A stretch of DNA of 64,000 nucleotides from Oikopleura dioica (GCA_907165135.1 OU015567.1:6510001-6574000); one strand, 5' to 3'; shown: positions 12,417 through 20,164, counted from the first letter of the stretch. Numbers and translations are program-made. Notes: generated from the sequence alone by a model not told the origin.

Positions 12417-13596
12417 CTAAAGAGTACAGTAATCAACAGGAGCGACATAAATGATTGGGAATCCATATTCAGCCATTTTATGGCCACCAATAACATTAGA
12501 CGAGACAATATTCTCTTCTAAGTCTTTCTAGAGCTCAGAATAAATTTGTAAAAACTAAGAGGTAATATTTTTTCCCAAGAATATCCGAGAATCTAACATT
12601 TTAAAGCTCTTTACTAAAATAACTTTTTGAATTGATTTTGATTGTGATAGCTCGCCATGAGTTCCAGGAAATATGATGATAGAATCATCGAATAATATGG
12701 TTGATGGAGAATAAACAGCCTAAAATTAGGACGCGACGACTATTGTTGATAGTTATTTTACCTTGAAAAGATAGCCAATAACTGACCACTTATTGTTCAT
12801 CAATCGCCAAATTTCATCCAGTGGGTTGCCGATTTTACTATCTAATCCTCCGATAGTCAAAAGGCTTCCAGATGGTAACCCGACCGCAGAAAAGGAGTGA
12901 ATCCACCTAAAAATTAATCTTACTTATCATTTTTTCTCGTTTACTCTGGATGCATTTGTAGCAAAATCCAGCCATCGTCAGTCAATTTCTCAACTGCGCC
13001 GTATGCATATTTTCCTCCGACAACAGTAGGCCGACCATTGTAGAAGGCTAATTCGCCCATCGAATGGATCCCTTCCGGAGCACTAATTTTTGCTAATGAT
13101 TGTCCATCGTACAGCTCACAGGTTTCAACAGCATTAAATTCATCAAAGCCAAAGCAAACCATTGCTAAAAGGGGTTGAATGTACATAAAATTTCATTGAG
13201 AGTAACCTTTACTGCCTTCATTAATAGCTAAAACTGCATGTCCATAGTTATAACGATAAGAAAGCCGGGCAGGTAGTTCTCTGAATTCGCACCTTTCCAA
13301 TCGAGCAATCTATAAAATTTTAAAGCCCTGTCTTTTTGCTTGTACTAATTACCCTATGTCCATCATAATATCCTCCAAAGATATGGAGCTGGTTATCAAG
13401 CAGCGCATGTCTGGAAAAAAGAATGTTAAAAAACGATTCCTCGAAGGCTACTTTTTTATTGATCGACCATCCATCAGCAAGTAATGCATATGGACTCATC
13501 GGTCCAGAACCAGCACTTTTTATAGGCAATATCACATTCATCTGGAGCGATGAATCAGAAGAGAAGATAAAGTTTTGAACCTCCACATTTCCAGAC
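12417..13596 (-). CDS. Kelch-like beta-propeller exons (3' part of a larger gene)
   Basis: Six exons in consistent phase, no stops: LHIFGGYYDGHR|IARLERCEFRELP..|MVCFGFDEFNAVETCELYDG..VVGGK..|LLTIGGLD..EIWRL..|..FPIIYVAPVDYCTL*. Confidence 0.8.
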
Positions 13597-13835
13597 TTAA
13601 GGGATCATCCCCCGATTTTTCAAAACTTTGGCACCGGTCATTATCGCCTATGATTAGATTCCTCGTGTTCTGAGGATCATTTTGATGTATGATAGTACCC
13701 CTTTTCATAAATGCATCCCCGAAATTTTGGCTCCCAAAGTTCGGGAAAATGCATGTAAATTGTACTTAGCGTGAAAATCGCATTTTTTTTTCGATTTTTC
13801 ATTGTCATCGAAATAACACAAACAAGGGGAGGGGG

Positions 13836-13941
13836 TCGAAACTATTCTGCATGCAGAATTATTTCGTCGGAAAATAGCCCTTTTTTCGACGAAACTATTC
13901 TGCATTTTGCAGAACTATTCTGCATGCAGAATAGTTTCGAA
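13836..13941. repeat. Array of palindromic units (CTATTCTGCATGCAGAATAG core)
   Basis: GAAACTATTCTGCA recurs three times (one copy as GAACTATTCTGCA); includes a perfect 20-bp palindrome. Confidence 0.8.
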
Positions 13942-14328
13942 GGTTTCCCCAAACAAGGGCTCTTTCGAAAGCTTAGAATGTGAAGATTACGAATATAATA
14001 ACCGCATTAAAATTTTCAGCCAATTGTTGGCGCTAGAGAGCATTCAAACCCCCAAATAACGCCAAAAATCGTTTCAAAAAGTTTTACAACTATAATTTTT
14101 TTATTCACTTATCCGATCATGCTGATTCTACCAAAAAATATAGATTAGCGTCTATACTTTTAGATAAACCAAAAAGATTTTGGATCCTAAAGCCCAAAAA
14201 AAAGTAGATACGATTTGAAAATGACCTAAAATGGCCATTTTTCAAAATGTTAATCACTTTGACGGCCTGTAATGCATAAGCGAATGATTCTACCAGAATT
14301 TGCTCCTTTTGAAGCGGGCTTTCTAATG

Positions 14329-14610
14329 CGGGGAGACGGACGGTGCCGGTACCAAATTTAGTACCCGGTACCAAAATTGGAACCCGGCACCAAAAATTGG
14401 TACCCGGTACCAAAGTCAAACATTTTTTCTGACTCATCAAAAAACTAATGTCCGCTCCGCGGCTGAAGTGTAAGAAAACTTCATTTATTGACCGAATACA
14501 CCTTTTAAAATCAATTTCGGCTCGGTATCCTGACATTATTTTGGTACCGGGTACCAGAAATTTGGTACCGGGTACCAATTTTGGATTGGTACCGGCACCG
14601 TCCGTCCCCG
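14329..14610. mobile_element. 282-bp MITE with subterminal GGTACCCGGTACC arrays
   Basis: TIR CGGGG(AG)ACGGACGGTGCCGGTACCAA; flanking direct repeat CTAATG at 14323-14328 and 14611-14616. Confidence 0.85.
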
Positions 14611-14692
14611 CTAATGCGCACAAAACCAGCTTCCTACGTATGCTCAAAAAAGTAGATAGAGGTCAAAGTTGACGAAATGGGGGATCCCTTAA

Positions 14693-17600
14693 ACTTGAAG
14701 ATCCTGATCTTTTTGTTTTTGAATGTTTCAAGTCCTTTTATATTTTTTATTTTTCGTTGCTTATTGAATTCGATAAAAGATGATTTTAAAAGAGAATTTG
14801 AATTAATTTTCAATTCTGTCGATCCTGATGCATTTTTTGTGAAATAAATCGTCCGTCAAAATAATCTGAATCCACCCAAAGGGAGCTCCTATGAATGCCA
14901 ATCGTAAAAAGTTGCTTCCGTTAAAAAATTGGGCTTCGATGATTTTTCTATCTTTTGAAAAGCTTAAATTCTTCGGAAAATAGATTTGCAGCTCAAAAGT
15001 TTCTGTCACATTAAACTTCATTTGAACAGTCGAAATGTGTTCTAACTCTTCGAGAGAAGAGAATAAGTTGTTTGGGATGATCGTTTTGAAGAAACAGCTG
15101 GGGCGAGGAAAACGTGGCTGGGAGACAGCATTCTTGGCGAATGCTGGAAAAACATCGTCGTGGAAGGCGAAAAACGGATTGCTGGTCACGTGCATTTTCT
15201 TTTCAGCCTTTTGTTGGACAAATTCTAGCTCTACTTGTTCTTTCAGTGGGATTTTATGCCAGTAAATTCAACGCCAAAATGTCTAACATTGTCAAAATTG
15301 ATAAATCCCCAACAAAATGATAGACAATCTCAAAAGTAGCATCAAAAACGTAGTTCTGAATGTAAATTCGTTCATTATTGACTATTGCATTCGCGAAGTA
15401 CTCGCATTCATCGTTGTTGATTCCACTCTGATCCGTGTATAAAGGATCATTTGGAGCAAATAAATTCGAGGTACAGATGGCAGGGTTCGGTAATTTGAGC
15501 TCACGCTAAAACTCAAGGAAACAAAGCTTGAGACTCACGTTTTTAATTTGAGTTTTGAGAACTCAGAGATGAGAAATCAATTCTGGCGATCCATGAGCCA
15601 ATCAAGGAAGCGCTCGCTTAATTTGAGTTTTGAAAACTCAAAACTCTCAAATCTCCCAAAACTCAAAGCTCTCAAAATCTCAAATCTTCTCAAAATGATT
15701 TCTCAAGTCACTTTGAGTTCTCAATTTGAGGAAATTTGAGCGTCTAGCCAAAATGAGTTTTAGCTTGAGCTCAAATTACCGAACCCTGACAGATGGACAC
15801 TTCATCGTATTCTACAAGAGAGCCTATCCACTCTCTGGCGAGAGTCAGAAATTTTCCATCTGCTTCTAGCAATACTGAATACAGCGTGTTTGACAGGGCG
15901 ATACTTCTTGACACGAGAATCAAAAGCAACTTTCCCGAATCGATCTTTTCGGCGTTGAAAATATCATCTTATACCATTTCATCTTATCAAAAAATTTCCA
16001 ACCCTTTTCAAAGGAACGACATGGACCGGGTCCAAGTCTCTTAATTCCGCAGGCAAGCCAACTTCGCCCTTCTTCCATCCTCTCTCCAATTCTTCACTTC
16101 TTCTTATTCTGTTTAAAGCCATCGTTGTCGAGAGTTTGATATAATGATCACCCATTCTGACACTCATCAGATAAAATACGCCATTAAAACTGGCCGACGA
16201 AACTTTCGCATTGAAATGATTACTGGCGATGTAGCCCTGAGCTTCTTCAAAACGATTCAAATTGAAATCAGGAGCGTAGTAGAAGCATTTCTCCGAACGT
16301 CCAGTTGGAGCGCTTTTCACGGTCAAAAATATCGGCAATCAATTTTCTAATCCTCAATTTTCATCTCCCTCATTTTTGACCTTTTTCAAATTGCGACGAC
16401 GGGGAAAATGTTTCTATCCTTTTCTTTTCGGCGTATCTGAATCTGATGAGTACCAATTGATGATCCAAAATGAAAAAGAAAGAATCCTCTTTAAAAATAT
16501 CAGTAAAAAGGACGATAAGAAAAATGAACATACACTCTTCTGTGGCGATTAAGAACAAAAAGTGAAACATCACCATTTTCCCTGAGTATCATTAAATTTC
16601 CAATCGCATCGACCAAGTAATGCTCCCCAGAAAGAAAAGTAGCACCAGTTGACTTCGCTGTTTTTATTGATCTGTTAATTGTGAGCCAGTTTTTCAATAA
16701 AAACGTTCATAAGGAAGCAAAGAATCTGAAGCTTTCAATATATTTTGCTTTTTCTTTCCACTAAAATCGGTAAAAACAATCGGGAACTCTTTTTGTTCCT
16801 CATTTTTTGAATTTTCCCAGCGACCAGTTATCAGTTTAATGTTTTCTTTCCCAAAAGTTTGTGCGGCTGTGGAACTCTTTTGCAAGTCAAAAGCAGGAAT
16901 CATTTTCTGTCGCGATCCAAGTTTTTGGCATTCGTAATAAGGACAAGGACAGCCAAGAGGACAATACTTTTGAGTTGGACAAACTTCTCCAGCGGATTCA
17001 GAAGTTCTAGTCAGCTCGAAGCAGATCGACTCACAGGGAGCAATCGGGTAAGTCCTTGTTGATTCCAAAACTAAGGTTTCTGAACAAAGATGTCGGCAAA
17101 TTTTCTGATCGTAAAGCTTTTTCTTTTGACAGCGGCGGAGATTCACTTCGTTTTCTTCGTCAGAGTAAACGAGATGCTTTTTTTCTTTTGATTCGATTTT
17201 AGAAATCGGGCCTGGGAGGCTGAATTCTTCCGTTTCATAGCACTGCTTCATCAGGTGCCCACAGTAGTCCATCGTGGCAATTTGAACGCATTTCTTGTAG
17301 TTTCGGTTACAAGTTGTTGTCAGAAAAGTCGAAACACCGCGAGATAGCTTCAATGAGTAGAAATTCGCTAAAAATATCAAAACAAAAAGGGAACTTATAG
17401 CGATAAATTACCAATAAGCATGATCGTTATCCAAAAAACTGACCCAATTCCAAGATATGTGACCCTTTGAGGCGTTGTCGAAAAACCATGGCGAGCAAAG
17501 CTCAGTCGGGCGTTGACTTTTTTCTTCCATGTCTTCTTCTTTTTCAAATCTTGTTTCTGCGTATGAATGCTTCGGATTGTTAGAATTTCTTCTGGAAGCA

Positions 17601-17760
17601 AAAAAACTTGGCCATTCATCTGATGAAGAAAACCGATGCAATGGCAATCCAAACACTTTGAAGAAATAGTCAATTCCAAATTATTTTATTAAATTTATAC
17701 CTGAATTTTCGCCTTATTAATTTCACTTGTATTTGTTTCCGTTTCTTCTTCAATAGTCAT
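14693..17760 (-). CDS. Type II membrane protein with Cys-rich region (GCPCPYYEC); probably the 5' part of the kelch-like gene. Joins near 15255, 14810 and 15975 are unresolved
   Basis: MTIEEE..KIQ|CLDCHC..VTYLGIGSVFWITIMLIA|NFY (TM) then CPTQKYCPLGCPCPYYECQK; long open frames at 16694-17380, 15979-16338, 15960-15255 (once the MITE is removed) and 14803-15240. Confidence 0.6.
15481..15788. mobile_element. 308-bp hAT-type MITE inserted in a coding exon
   Basis: About 35-bp TIR CAGGGTTCGGTAATTTGAGCTCA(C/A)GCTAAAACTCA; exact 8-bp TSD ACAGATGG at 15473-15480 and 15789-15796; the empty site reads EVSICTSNLF in frame. Confidence 0.93.
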
Positions 17761-17982
17761 GGTAAATTGGAATAATCTCTAGCTGCGCAAGGAAATTTTT
17801 TTTAACAAATTGTAAAAATGGCAAAAAAACTCGATGGTGCGAATCGCGGACGGTACTTTTTCTGACAGCTCGACATTCAAGTCTTCCCTCACGACTTAGC
17901 GTCATATCATATGAGTTTCTTTTCGGGTCACTTGCTTTGTCAACTTTATTCAAAATACAATCAAGGAAGAGAACAGTGTTCA

Positions 17983-20164
17983 CTAAGATAAAATTTTGGG
18001 AATGATTTCCTCGGAAATATTGAGCTGCGACATTTTGTTGCTCATCTTTGTCGCTAAGCAGCTTTGGTGCTGATCGCTAGAAGTCGCCGAGCAGTTTTTC
18101 GGATGCCATTTGTGGAATAAACTTGGATCGTGAGCGCGGATTATGTTCAACTGAAAATATTATTTATGAAAAAAATTTTTTCGTTCATTTACTTTTTTGG
18201 AAATGCACTCGTCTGCGAATTCAATATCTTCTCCTCCCCATCCTTTCAGGAAGGTGTTGAGTCCATTTGTGAGTTGGTATGTTTTCTTGCTCATAGCAAC
18301 CATTCCGTAAGAATACAGTCGCCAGTAGCCGTTTTCGTCGGTTATATTTTGACCAGCGTTGATTTCAAACTGACTTCAAGGGAAAAAATTTTCAAAAATA
18401 CCAAGAAAAATTCTTACCTGAAGAAAACGGGGAAGAAAACGGAGTTTTCAACGGTCAATAATCTGACTCGATCGAGAATGTCTGCTTTTAAAATGAGATC
18501 CACGTCGGAAACGAAGAAGACCTCCTCTTCTTCCAGCATCGATATTCCCTGGTTGATGCAATCAGCTCGATTGAAAGGCAGATCTTGACAGGGCACCGTT
18601 GATATTTGCTGGTTTCCGTACTCAATGGGAAGTTTGGAGGCGAGATATTCGGAGATATCATCAAGTTCGGCGTTGACCACGGCGACCACGAGCTTAAGAT
18701 TGCCATCTTCTGCAGAAAGCTCTTGATACTGGTCTATGAATCGATGAAATGTGTCTCCACGGCCACTTATTGGAACGATAATTGTCAGAGATCTTTTTTT
18801 GATCAGAGAATCTTTCGTGATTTTACTTGGTTCTGTCATCCAGGTCTTGCAGTTCATTTCTTGAATGAAGACGTCAATCGAGTCGCTGAATTCATCAGAA
18901 AATTGGACGACGAAATACTCATTGTTATGCCCGTAGTAGACATTCTTATCTGTGATTTCATTTCCCCAGCCTTTTTGGGTAAGAGCATTTTGCAGATTTC
19001 TCGGCGGCCGCATGACAAAAGCCGGCGCGACTTCTGAATATCGCTTTTCCCAGTGCTCGCCCCAATCTTCTATTTTTCGGTAAAGAATTTTATTCAGCAT
19101 GCTGACTTCCAATTCGCCTTTCATTGAACTTTCCTTGAATCTGGAAATGTACAATGACAGATTTTTGGCTCGATTCTTGAGCAGTTCTTTTCTGATTTCT
19201 CGCTGGTTTTCTGGCGTTTTTGCTGCATGGAGAGTTATTGCTGGTTCGATGATATCTTCTCCCAGATCATCTGGGACTTTGAAATTATCGCTGTACCCGA
19301 CATCGCCTGGTTCGACGTTTTTCTTCCAGTTATTGTGCATGAGCGCGTTCATTTCATAACTCTTGGTGCAGTAGACATCGAGTTTCTCCCAAATGCATCT
19401 GCAGAGCTCAATATCTTCATGATTCGTGTACAGCTGTTTCGTACAAGCGGGAACATGTGGTTTCATGTCCCTGACCAAAGCGCTGGAAAAGATCATTCCC
19501 GGGCCTCCCATGCAGTAAAACTTGCCAGGTGGGATGAAATCATCGGCGTCGCGGCCAAAACCTGGGCTTCCGATGAGATGATGTTTTGAAGAGTCAATTT
19601 TTGACAGGAAACGAGAAAGATTTTCCCACTGAATAACAGAATCGTCGTCGATTCTCATGAACCAGTCGTATTCGTCAGCCAAAGAACCGAAATGAGCTAG
19701 AAAGATGAGTTTAAAGAATGGTTACTGTTTCTTACAGAGCATTCTGAAGGACTTTTCTTGCGGTGGATAGATGTAGTCATCGACAGAAAGCGTTGTTGTC
19801 AACCCTTCGAAGCCTTCAATAGGGCTGGAGAAAAATCGAAGAGTAGCTTCTTCCTCATTTATCTCTTTTAGCCAAGTTTCTAAAAGGTTCTTCTTTGATT
19901 TCTTCTGTTTTAAAAGGTACCTTTTATAGCAGCGCCGCGAGTTTTTAGATAATCAGGAGTAGTCATGATTCCGATGAAGACTTTTTTCTTTGGCCATTTC
20001 TCTTGTTGGGTGATCTTCGATGCTCTCGATTGATTTGAAGGTCTCTGCCATTCTCTAAAGTTGCAAGAAGAGAGTTTCAAGAACTGGAAAGCCTCTCCTA
20101 TCACAAAGCCAATAACGATTGATAGAAAAAGGTTCCATTTAAAAACGCGGAAAAACTGCCGCAT
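17983..20164 (-). CDS. CHSY1: Chondroitin sulfate synthase (CHSY family)
   Basis: N-terminal TM segment; VFIGIMTTPDYLKTRGAAIKETW, YPPQEKSF, YDWFMRIDDD, YCMGGPG, HEDIELCRC, FFVSDVDL, FFPVFFSQF, GWGGEDIE, LFHKWHPKNC; GT-AG introns. Confidence 0.92.

Follow-up and report, generated by a model that had tools for sequence, protein, structure and literature searches.

A 64,000-nucleotide stretch of the Oikopleura dioica genome (GCA_907165135.1 OU015567.1:6510001-6574000, here called the window) carries a miniature transposon of 308 bp, at 15481-15788, which interrupts a coding exon read from the minus strand. The transposon is a miniature inverted-repeat transposable element (MITE) of hAT type. The insertion itself, its youth, the existence of an empty allele, the coding context of the site and a second transposon insertion in the same gene are all established. 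On balance, the gene in this haplotype is taken to be a disabled or decaying allele whose function has probably been lost. An earlier reading made from this DNA alone (the sequence-only reading) had proposed that the MITE supplies its own splice sites and is being converted into an intron; that self-intronising interpretation stays undecided, with the evidence leaning against it.

Evidence for a recent insertion comes from comparison of the 6 kb between 13100 and 19099 with two DNA sequencing runs, X1 and X5, and two RNA runs. X1 contains 94% of the sampled words, while X5, which bears the same species label, contains 49% and has a single-letter divergence of approximately 3%. One X1 contig, free of mismatches, extends from a point 28 nt inside the MITE through 1.37 kb of flank; the junction between element and flank is therefore real, since it is crossed in independent data. 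In X5, a contig joins 15472 to 15789 and skips 316 nt (308 + 8), with eight letters common to both sides. Its depth of 76.6 equals the single-copy depth of that run, and the empty site carries one copy of ACAGATGG, the sequence that is duplicated on both sides of the element in the window. The empty allele that the sequence-only reading had called for thus exists: X5 holds the exact unoccupied site, and therefore the insertion arose after the X1 and X5 lineages had split. The MITE insertion is young and lineage-specific, which fits its near-perfect inverted ends. Precise excision was considered as the source of the X5 empty site and rejected, because exactly one copy of the duplication is present and all homologs are collinear across the site.

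Further joints were seen in the contigs of these runs. An X5 joint at 16290/16372 was considered as an absent intron and dropped, because the joined sequence restores no frame. X1 contigs have joints at 15433/16089 and 17158/17516, which skip 655 and 357 nt and whose anchoring sides are 31 and 23 nt long; these may reflect paralogs or structural variants.

To which class of transposon does the element belong? It is flanked by the 8-bp duplication ACAGATGG and its ends start with CAGGG. The 23-nt end CAGGGTTCGGTAATTTGAGCTCA has exactly two exact matches in the window, in inverted orientation at 15481-15503 and 15766-15788, where the chance expectation is 0, and the inverted arms are identical at 34 of 35 positions. 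The end sequence that characterises the element is CAGGGTTCGGTAATTTGAG. The ends of hAT transposons are short inverted repeats that open with 5'-YARNG, and Ac opens with CAGGG. Their target preference, nTnnnnAn, is weak, a soft preference that is no defining rule; the duplication here (ACAGATGG / CCATCTGT) deviates from it in having no T at position 2 and no A at position 7. As for the hallmarks of a MITE, the element is shorter than 800 bp and has inverted ends, a target duplication and no coding capacity: its open reading frames (ORFs) span only 38-63 amino acids and none of them has a protein match. The assignment to non-autonomous hAT-type elements is made because of the 8-bp duplication, the CAGGG ends, the small size and the lack of coding capacity, and it agrees with what the sequence-only reading had called the element.

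The interior of the MITE contains an array of short repeats of the TTTGAG/CTCAAA type. Within the window there is no second copy of the ends and no transposase gene that bears them, and a scan of metagenome contigs for the 23-nt end CAGGGTTCGGTAATTTGAGCTCA returned no match. The summed depth of DNA contigs that match the core ranges from approximately 75 times (X1) to approximately 470 times (X5) the single-copy level. Such a depth does not equal a copy number, and other families may have the short repeats of the interior in common with this one. The depth suggests that the MITE belongs to a multi-copy family.

Is the interrupted frame a genuine gene? With the MITE and a single duplication copy deleted computationally, residues 186-290 of the closest relative (P0045) align ungapped on 15944-15314 at 71% identity, and every other homolog is likewise collinear across the emptied site. 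The host exon is therefore real coding sequence, since homologs align ungapped through it, and the open frame of about 130 codons that the sequence-only reading had described at the empty site was recovered as 60 + 72 codons. A search of 1.84 billion representative proteins with the 72-residue ORF downstream of the MITE gave 24 matches at E<=0.001. On the minus strand, longer relatives (320-620 residues) align to 16326-15985, 15944-15789, 15472-15314 and 15240-14863, with a weaker alignment at 13445-13205. The family motifs (CFYYAP..NLNRF, SEWIG, NNDECEYF, SNPFFAFHDDVFP and LHIFGG, drawn from homologs P0012-P0089) are collinear in the host gene.

Four members of this family are listed at NCBI as 'unnamed protein product [Oikopleura dioica]', and the rest, dozens of ORFs, come from marine metagenome assemblies. 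A Pfam search of the host ORFs and their homologs found no domain, and word-index protein searches found nothing above 71% identity to the host protein. Exact look-ups aimed at near-identical proteins, a public gene model and the contigs of the DNA runs brought up no record, and the contigs that did turn up belong to distant relatives. The family is large, fast-evolving and uncharacterised, and from its sequences it looks specific to larvaceans. A language-model atlas queried with the host protein returned weak leads only, to Kelch and Laminin_G_3, with scores below 0.9.

The MITE lies immediately after an invariant cysteine of the family and one residue ahead of an invariant serine (a slash marks such boundaries below). 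On the gene strand, the right copy of the duplication codes for the final codons (..S I C) of the upstream half of the exon. The stretch that precedes the cysteine varies in length among homologs; P0016, for example, has five additional residues there. With a mean pLDDT of 41, an AlphaFold2 model of the host protein, built from 29 sequences, was too poor for judging the insertion site.

Several observations concern the remaining structure of the gene. Relatives on two genomic metagenome contigs (L001 and L002) have continuous ORFs that lack the intervening sequences at 15945-16008, 15241-15313 and approximately 16327-16390, and the host introns are therefore lineage-specific. Two of the intervening sequences start with GTTGG(A/G). 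The best fit to homologs would need boundaries other than GT/AG (AA..AG, or TT..AG / GT..AA), and GT-AG or GG-AG boundaries cost 1-4 residues. A cysteine-rich ORF of 228 codons (..CPLGCPCPYYEC..; minus strand, 16697-17380) adjoins the host gene upstream and is possibly its 5' part; no Pfam domain matches this ORF, and the window contains no paralog of it.

The MITE is not the only lesion in this copy of the gene. The next coding stretch is broken by a second transposon of 1,088 bp, flanked by TTAA, with the ends GGGATCCCCC... and ...GGGGGATGATCCC. X5 is without this element too: one of its contigs passes directly from 13595 to 14688, leaving out 1,092 nt. When the TTAA transposon is removed, residues 279-432 of the homolog P0053 align in one frame across the site. 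The interior of the transposon (14330-14610) is rich in palindromic repeats that contain GGTACC, and these repeats draw approximately 200 partial RNA reads per run; related GGTACC repeats are thus transcribed somewhere, since these reads match them.

Compared with all homologs, the gene also appears to have shifted frame twice, by -1 each time, between the two transposons. The sequence in all 13 homologs aligned is ..NGSLWxDSDYF.., and the window encodes the same residues in another frame from approximately 14888-14896; a second change of frame is required 50-60 nt further on. Over 14688-14936 the X5 contig has a net excess of two letters, exactly the number that would restore the frame. The sequence-only reading held that it would be undermined if exonic copies showed no phase bias and sat only in decayed genes. 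At this locus the two apparent frameshifts match the picture of a decayed gene; they lean against self-intronisation without refuting it.

Table 1. Features of the interrupted gene and its transposons, numbered from the first letter of the window.
Feature	Position	Strand	Basis or detail
MITE, non-autonomous hAT-type, 308 bp, 38% G+C, without coding capacity	15481..15788	-	
Target-site duplication, left copy ACAGATGG	15473..15480		8-bp direct repeat
Target-site duplication, right copy ACAGATGG	15789..15796		8-bp direct repeat
Left terminal inverted repeat, 35 nt, first 23 perfect	15481..15515	+	holds proposed acceptor TTTTAG/C on gene strand
Right terminal inverted repeat	15754..15788	-	holds proposed donor TCG/GTAATT on gene strand
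Proposed GT-AG intron, 274 nt, predicted from sequence	15506..15779	-	top frame-preserving GT-AG pair
Second donor-like site AAC/GTGAGT, 6/9 matches, possible competitor	15533..15541 (at 15538)	-	inside MITE
Host exon, preceding (..SAPTGRSEKCFYYAPDFNLNRF...DLDPVHVVPL)	16009..16326	-	homolog alignment
Host exon, upstream half (IDSGKLLLILVSRS...EYDEVSIC)	15789..15944	-	tblastn of homologs
Host exon, downstream half (TSNLFAPNDPLYTDQSGINNDECEYF...FEIVYHF)	15314..15472	-	homolog alignment
Host exon, following (EQVELEFVQQKAEKKMHVTSNPFFAFHDDVFP...)	14897..15240	-	homolog alignment
Host gene, C-terminal coding stretches (..NQLHIFGGYYDGHRV.. / ..ARLERCEFRELP..)	13202..13600	-	homolog alignment
Apparent -1 frameshifts (two) against all homologs	14826..14896	-	first 14888-14896; second 14826-14838, run of six A
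TTAA-flanked transposon, 1,088 bp, in next coding stretch of host gene	13601..14688		TTAA copies 13597-13600 and 14689-14692

The best account of these lesions is as follows. A hAT-type MITE, probably from a multi-copy family, inserted recently, only in the lineage of the assembly, into a conserved coding exon, and the unspliced element would stop translation after five codons. A second young transposon, the TTAA element of 1.09 kb, breaks the next coding stretch, and the two apparent frameshifts between the insertions would add to the damage. The loss of one copy would be tolerated, since many paralogs exist. If the gene is transcribed, splicing at 15779/15506 could remove 274 nt and leave 14 extra residues in the protein, as in maize Ds1.

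What are these candidate splice sites? On the minus strand, the donor side reads ...TCC ATC TGT / CAG GGT TCG / GTAATT, with the G of GT at 15779, and the acceptor side reads ...GAGTTTTAG / CGTGAGCTC... (also written CGTGAGCTCAAATTACCGAACCCTG), with the AG at 15507-15506. The donor matches CAG/GTAAGT at six of nine positions. In the unspliced frame a stop follows five codons into the MITE (QGSVI, then stop). After removal of the 274 nt, 9 + 25 + 8 = 42 nt are left, which encode QGSRELKLPNPAIC and contain no stop; in this respect the arithmetic of the sequence-only reading holds exactly, as does its statement that the remainder tolerates two of three insertion phases (phases 0 and 2 are free of stops and phase 1 has TGA, in both orientations). 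Its claim that the two orientations are equivalent stands in part. The opposite orientation does have the GTAATT and TTTTAG hexamers at identical offsets, whereas the quality of the acceptor differs, with pyrimidines at 11 of the 15 positions before the AG on the gene strand versus 6 of 15 in the opposite orientation.

When the MITE was shuffled 5,000 times with dinucleotides preserved, a comparable donor/acceptor pair occurred in the terminal 45 nt in 3.8% of the shuffles, and in 0.9% the pair was also frame-neutral and free of stops. The thresholds were chosen after the MITE had been seen, and the case itself was picked out of many insertions, so that the result is mild evidence of non-randomness in the ends. 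The presence of GT and AG in the inverted ends is probably a latent property of the end sequences and not a selected function.

Might the gene nevertheless be functional? A tentative alternative, less probable than a disabled allele and built on sequence, is that the spliceosome uses the GT and AG of the inverted ends, that the 274 nt are removed, and that the protein carries a 14-residue insertion; the MITE would then be an intron born from a transposon and still polymorphic between populations. This reading also implies removal of the TTAA transposon and takes the frameshifts for errors of assembly. Several points speak for it and weigh against loss of function. By a crude score, 15779/15506 ranks first among the frame-preserving, stop-free GT-AG pairs around the MITE; pairs as good and as neutral are rare among the shuffles, with the post hoc thresholds already described; and the remainder is free of stops in the phase actually used. 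The insertion adjoins the stretch of variable length, and the duplication encodes ..IC, which would rebuild the IC/TS context downstream of the 42-nt scar, so the additional 14 residues might be tolerated. The host gene looks otherwise spliceable, since acceptable GT-AG or GG-AG solutions exist for its other intervening sequences. Past constraint is visible as well: the coding differences between the window and X5 comprise 12 synonymous and 15 non-synonymous changes, a dN/dS of roughly 0.4, which implies constraint for most of the time since the lineages split. At two conserved positions the residue in the window is a derived one, A for G in the SEWIG region and D for E in LLEAEG.

The frameshifts, too, may be assembly errors. 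An X1 contig over 14649-15423 has a net excess of 10 letters and no mismatches, with the positions of these letters not displayed, and six consecutive A stand at the second frameshift. A Nanopore-based assembly of this species is reported to have an estimated error rate of 1.3% (PMC8008620), though it may not be the source of the window. Against errors of this kind, no gap separates the neighbouring X1 contigs from the window in alignment.

There are also precedents for such an intron: an exact one in maize Ds1 (PMC5432752, citing Wessler 1991), and MITE-derived introns in the larvacean Fritillaria borealis (PMC11282704, citing Henriet 2019).

Against a new intron stands, first, the RNA. None of the indexed RNA runs is listed as containing the host exons. 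In the two raw oligo-dT RNA runs there is no read on unique sequence of 13100-19099, and hence no junction read or transcript; the nearby control, the 3' part of a neighbouring 422-codon glycosyltransferase-like ORF, is equally blank. Because the control is also without reads, silence of the gene is indistinguishable from a mismatch of lineage, and this tempers the case for a dead allele as well.

Second, the element folds. As RNA, the MITE is predicted to form a hairpin of -138 kcal/mol (z = -11 relative to shuffles), with GUAAUU and UUUUAG both within its terminal stem of 23 + 11 bp. In U1-dependent splicing, a 5' splice site within a stable stem is poorly used. The predicted stem would thus hinder use of the donor, though co-transcriptional binding could escape the hindrance. 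Third, at 274 nt the proposed intron greatly exceeds the median intron length of the species, 49 nt (PMC8008620), and a competing donor-like GTGAGT lies inside the MITE. Finally, the same allele has the second exonic transposon and the two apparent frameshifts, and the insertion parts the invariant cysteine from the region of the invariant serine. The sequence-only reading would become likely if the frameshifts proved to be assembly errors and transcripts turned up.

It is also conceivable, though unlikely, that the allele is transcribed and the MITE processed in some other way: retained and degraded with its transcript, spliced from GTGAGT or from cryptic sites, or lost together with the exon, so that the products would be aberrant or minor. 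As many as 139 frame-preserving, stop-free donor/acceptor pairs exist around the MITE once non-canonical G[ACG] donors are admitted, the internal donor-like site at 15538 is strong, and maize Ds1 yields several alternative products (PMC5432752); by contrast, no RNA product of any sort was found in the RNA runs examined. That the insertion is an assembly artefact, a repeat misplaced in an exon, is highly improbable: contigs from the DNA runs do break at the MITE, as expected of a repeat, but the mismatch-free X1 contig across its boundary, the perfect 8-bp duplication and the precisely matching empty site in X5 all argue against it.

Apart from the partial matches to the GGTACC repeats, the only RNA reads on the 6 kb fall on one short tract of the host gene. 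At 15100-15189 there are approximately 15 reads in X10 and 2 in X11, with 1-3 differences over 90 nt, and at 15189 they diverge into sequence that encodes ..QLEENEKLH/VTSNP... These reads come from a paralog that is expressed and is nearly identical to the host gene over this tract, possibly through gene conversion.

How does the disabled-allele account compare with known systems? Ordinary loss-of-function alleles caused by transposons share with this locus a young, lineage-specific insertion, a premature stop if unspliced, further lesions and a redundant gene. Such an allele is the default reading; it fits all the facts, and no difference is required.

The closest parallel for splicing is maize Ds1, a non-autonomous hAT element of approximately 400 bp that is spliced from exons (PMC5432752, citing Wessler 1991). 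Its donors lie 12, 22 and 33 nt from one end and its acceptor 24 nt from the other. The two elements are alike in being small hAT transposons (approximately 0.3-0.4 kb) that make an 8-bp duplication and lie in a coding exon, and their splice geometry would be nearly equal (9 and 25 nt here), with end pieces and duplication staying in the mRNA. The differences are that splicing of Ds1 was demonstrated on RNA, whereas here it is a prediction from sequence; that all Ds1 sites act in a single orientation, while the present element has its hexamers in both and the orientations differ only in acceptor context; and that the host of Ds1 is a plant and not a tunicate.

Introners have been described in Micromonas, Aureococcus and many other eukaryotes (Huff et al. 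2016; Gozashti et al. 2022, 2025; PMC9860276, PMC12130899; also PMC11282704). By definition they occur in many near-identical copies, annotated as spliced introns of unrelated genes; they usually form one splice site from the duplication, and their removal leaves little or no scar (PMC9860276, PMC12130899). The MITE resembles them in being a short DNA transposon in coding sequence, with inverted ends, a target duplication and splice-site-like sequence: at the level of sequence it brings GTAATT 9 nt and TTTTAG 25 nt from its ends and is frame-neutral together with its duplication. It differs in that the window has a single copy, both sites lie inside the element, and a 42-nt scar is predicted. 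With one copy in 64 kb and splice sites read from the sequence, membership among the introners is not claimable for this MITE.

Within larvaceans, Fritillaria borealis has introns with inverted ends at species-specific positions, which are thought to derive from MITE insertions (PMC11282704, citing Henriet 2019). Their boundaries are mostly other than GT/AG (AG-AC, AG-AT) and depend on an altered spliceosome. The two cases share the animal class and the insertion of MITEs into genes, whereas the proposed intron here would use an ordinary GT-AG pair inside its element and is found in Oikopleura.

A broader proposal is that this family of MITEs acts as an introner, and does so in a chordate. The Oikopleura spliceosome would use the built-in GT and AG, exonic insertions would be tolerated at once and leave 14-residue scars, and the TTAA transposon would be rescued likewise. 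From the sequence at hand this appears doubtful. The proposed mechanism is already known, from maize Ds1 (1991) and from introners (since 2016). What is added at this locus is the documented empty allele and the second insertion in the same gene.

For now, the locus amounts to a young and well-documented insertion in an exon of a gene copy that looks dispensable. If the splicing is true, it would represent a dated, polymorphic case in which a DNA transposon gave rise to an intron, in an animal whose introns are known to turn over fast; the ancestral empty allele is available, and the effect of the 14-residue scar would be directly testable. If the introner reading is true, the occupied and empty lineages would form a natural before-and-after pair for the birth of an intron.

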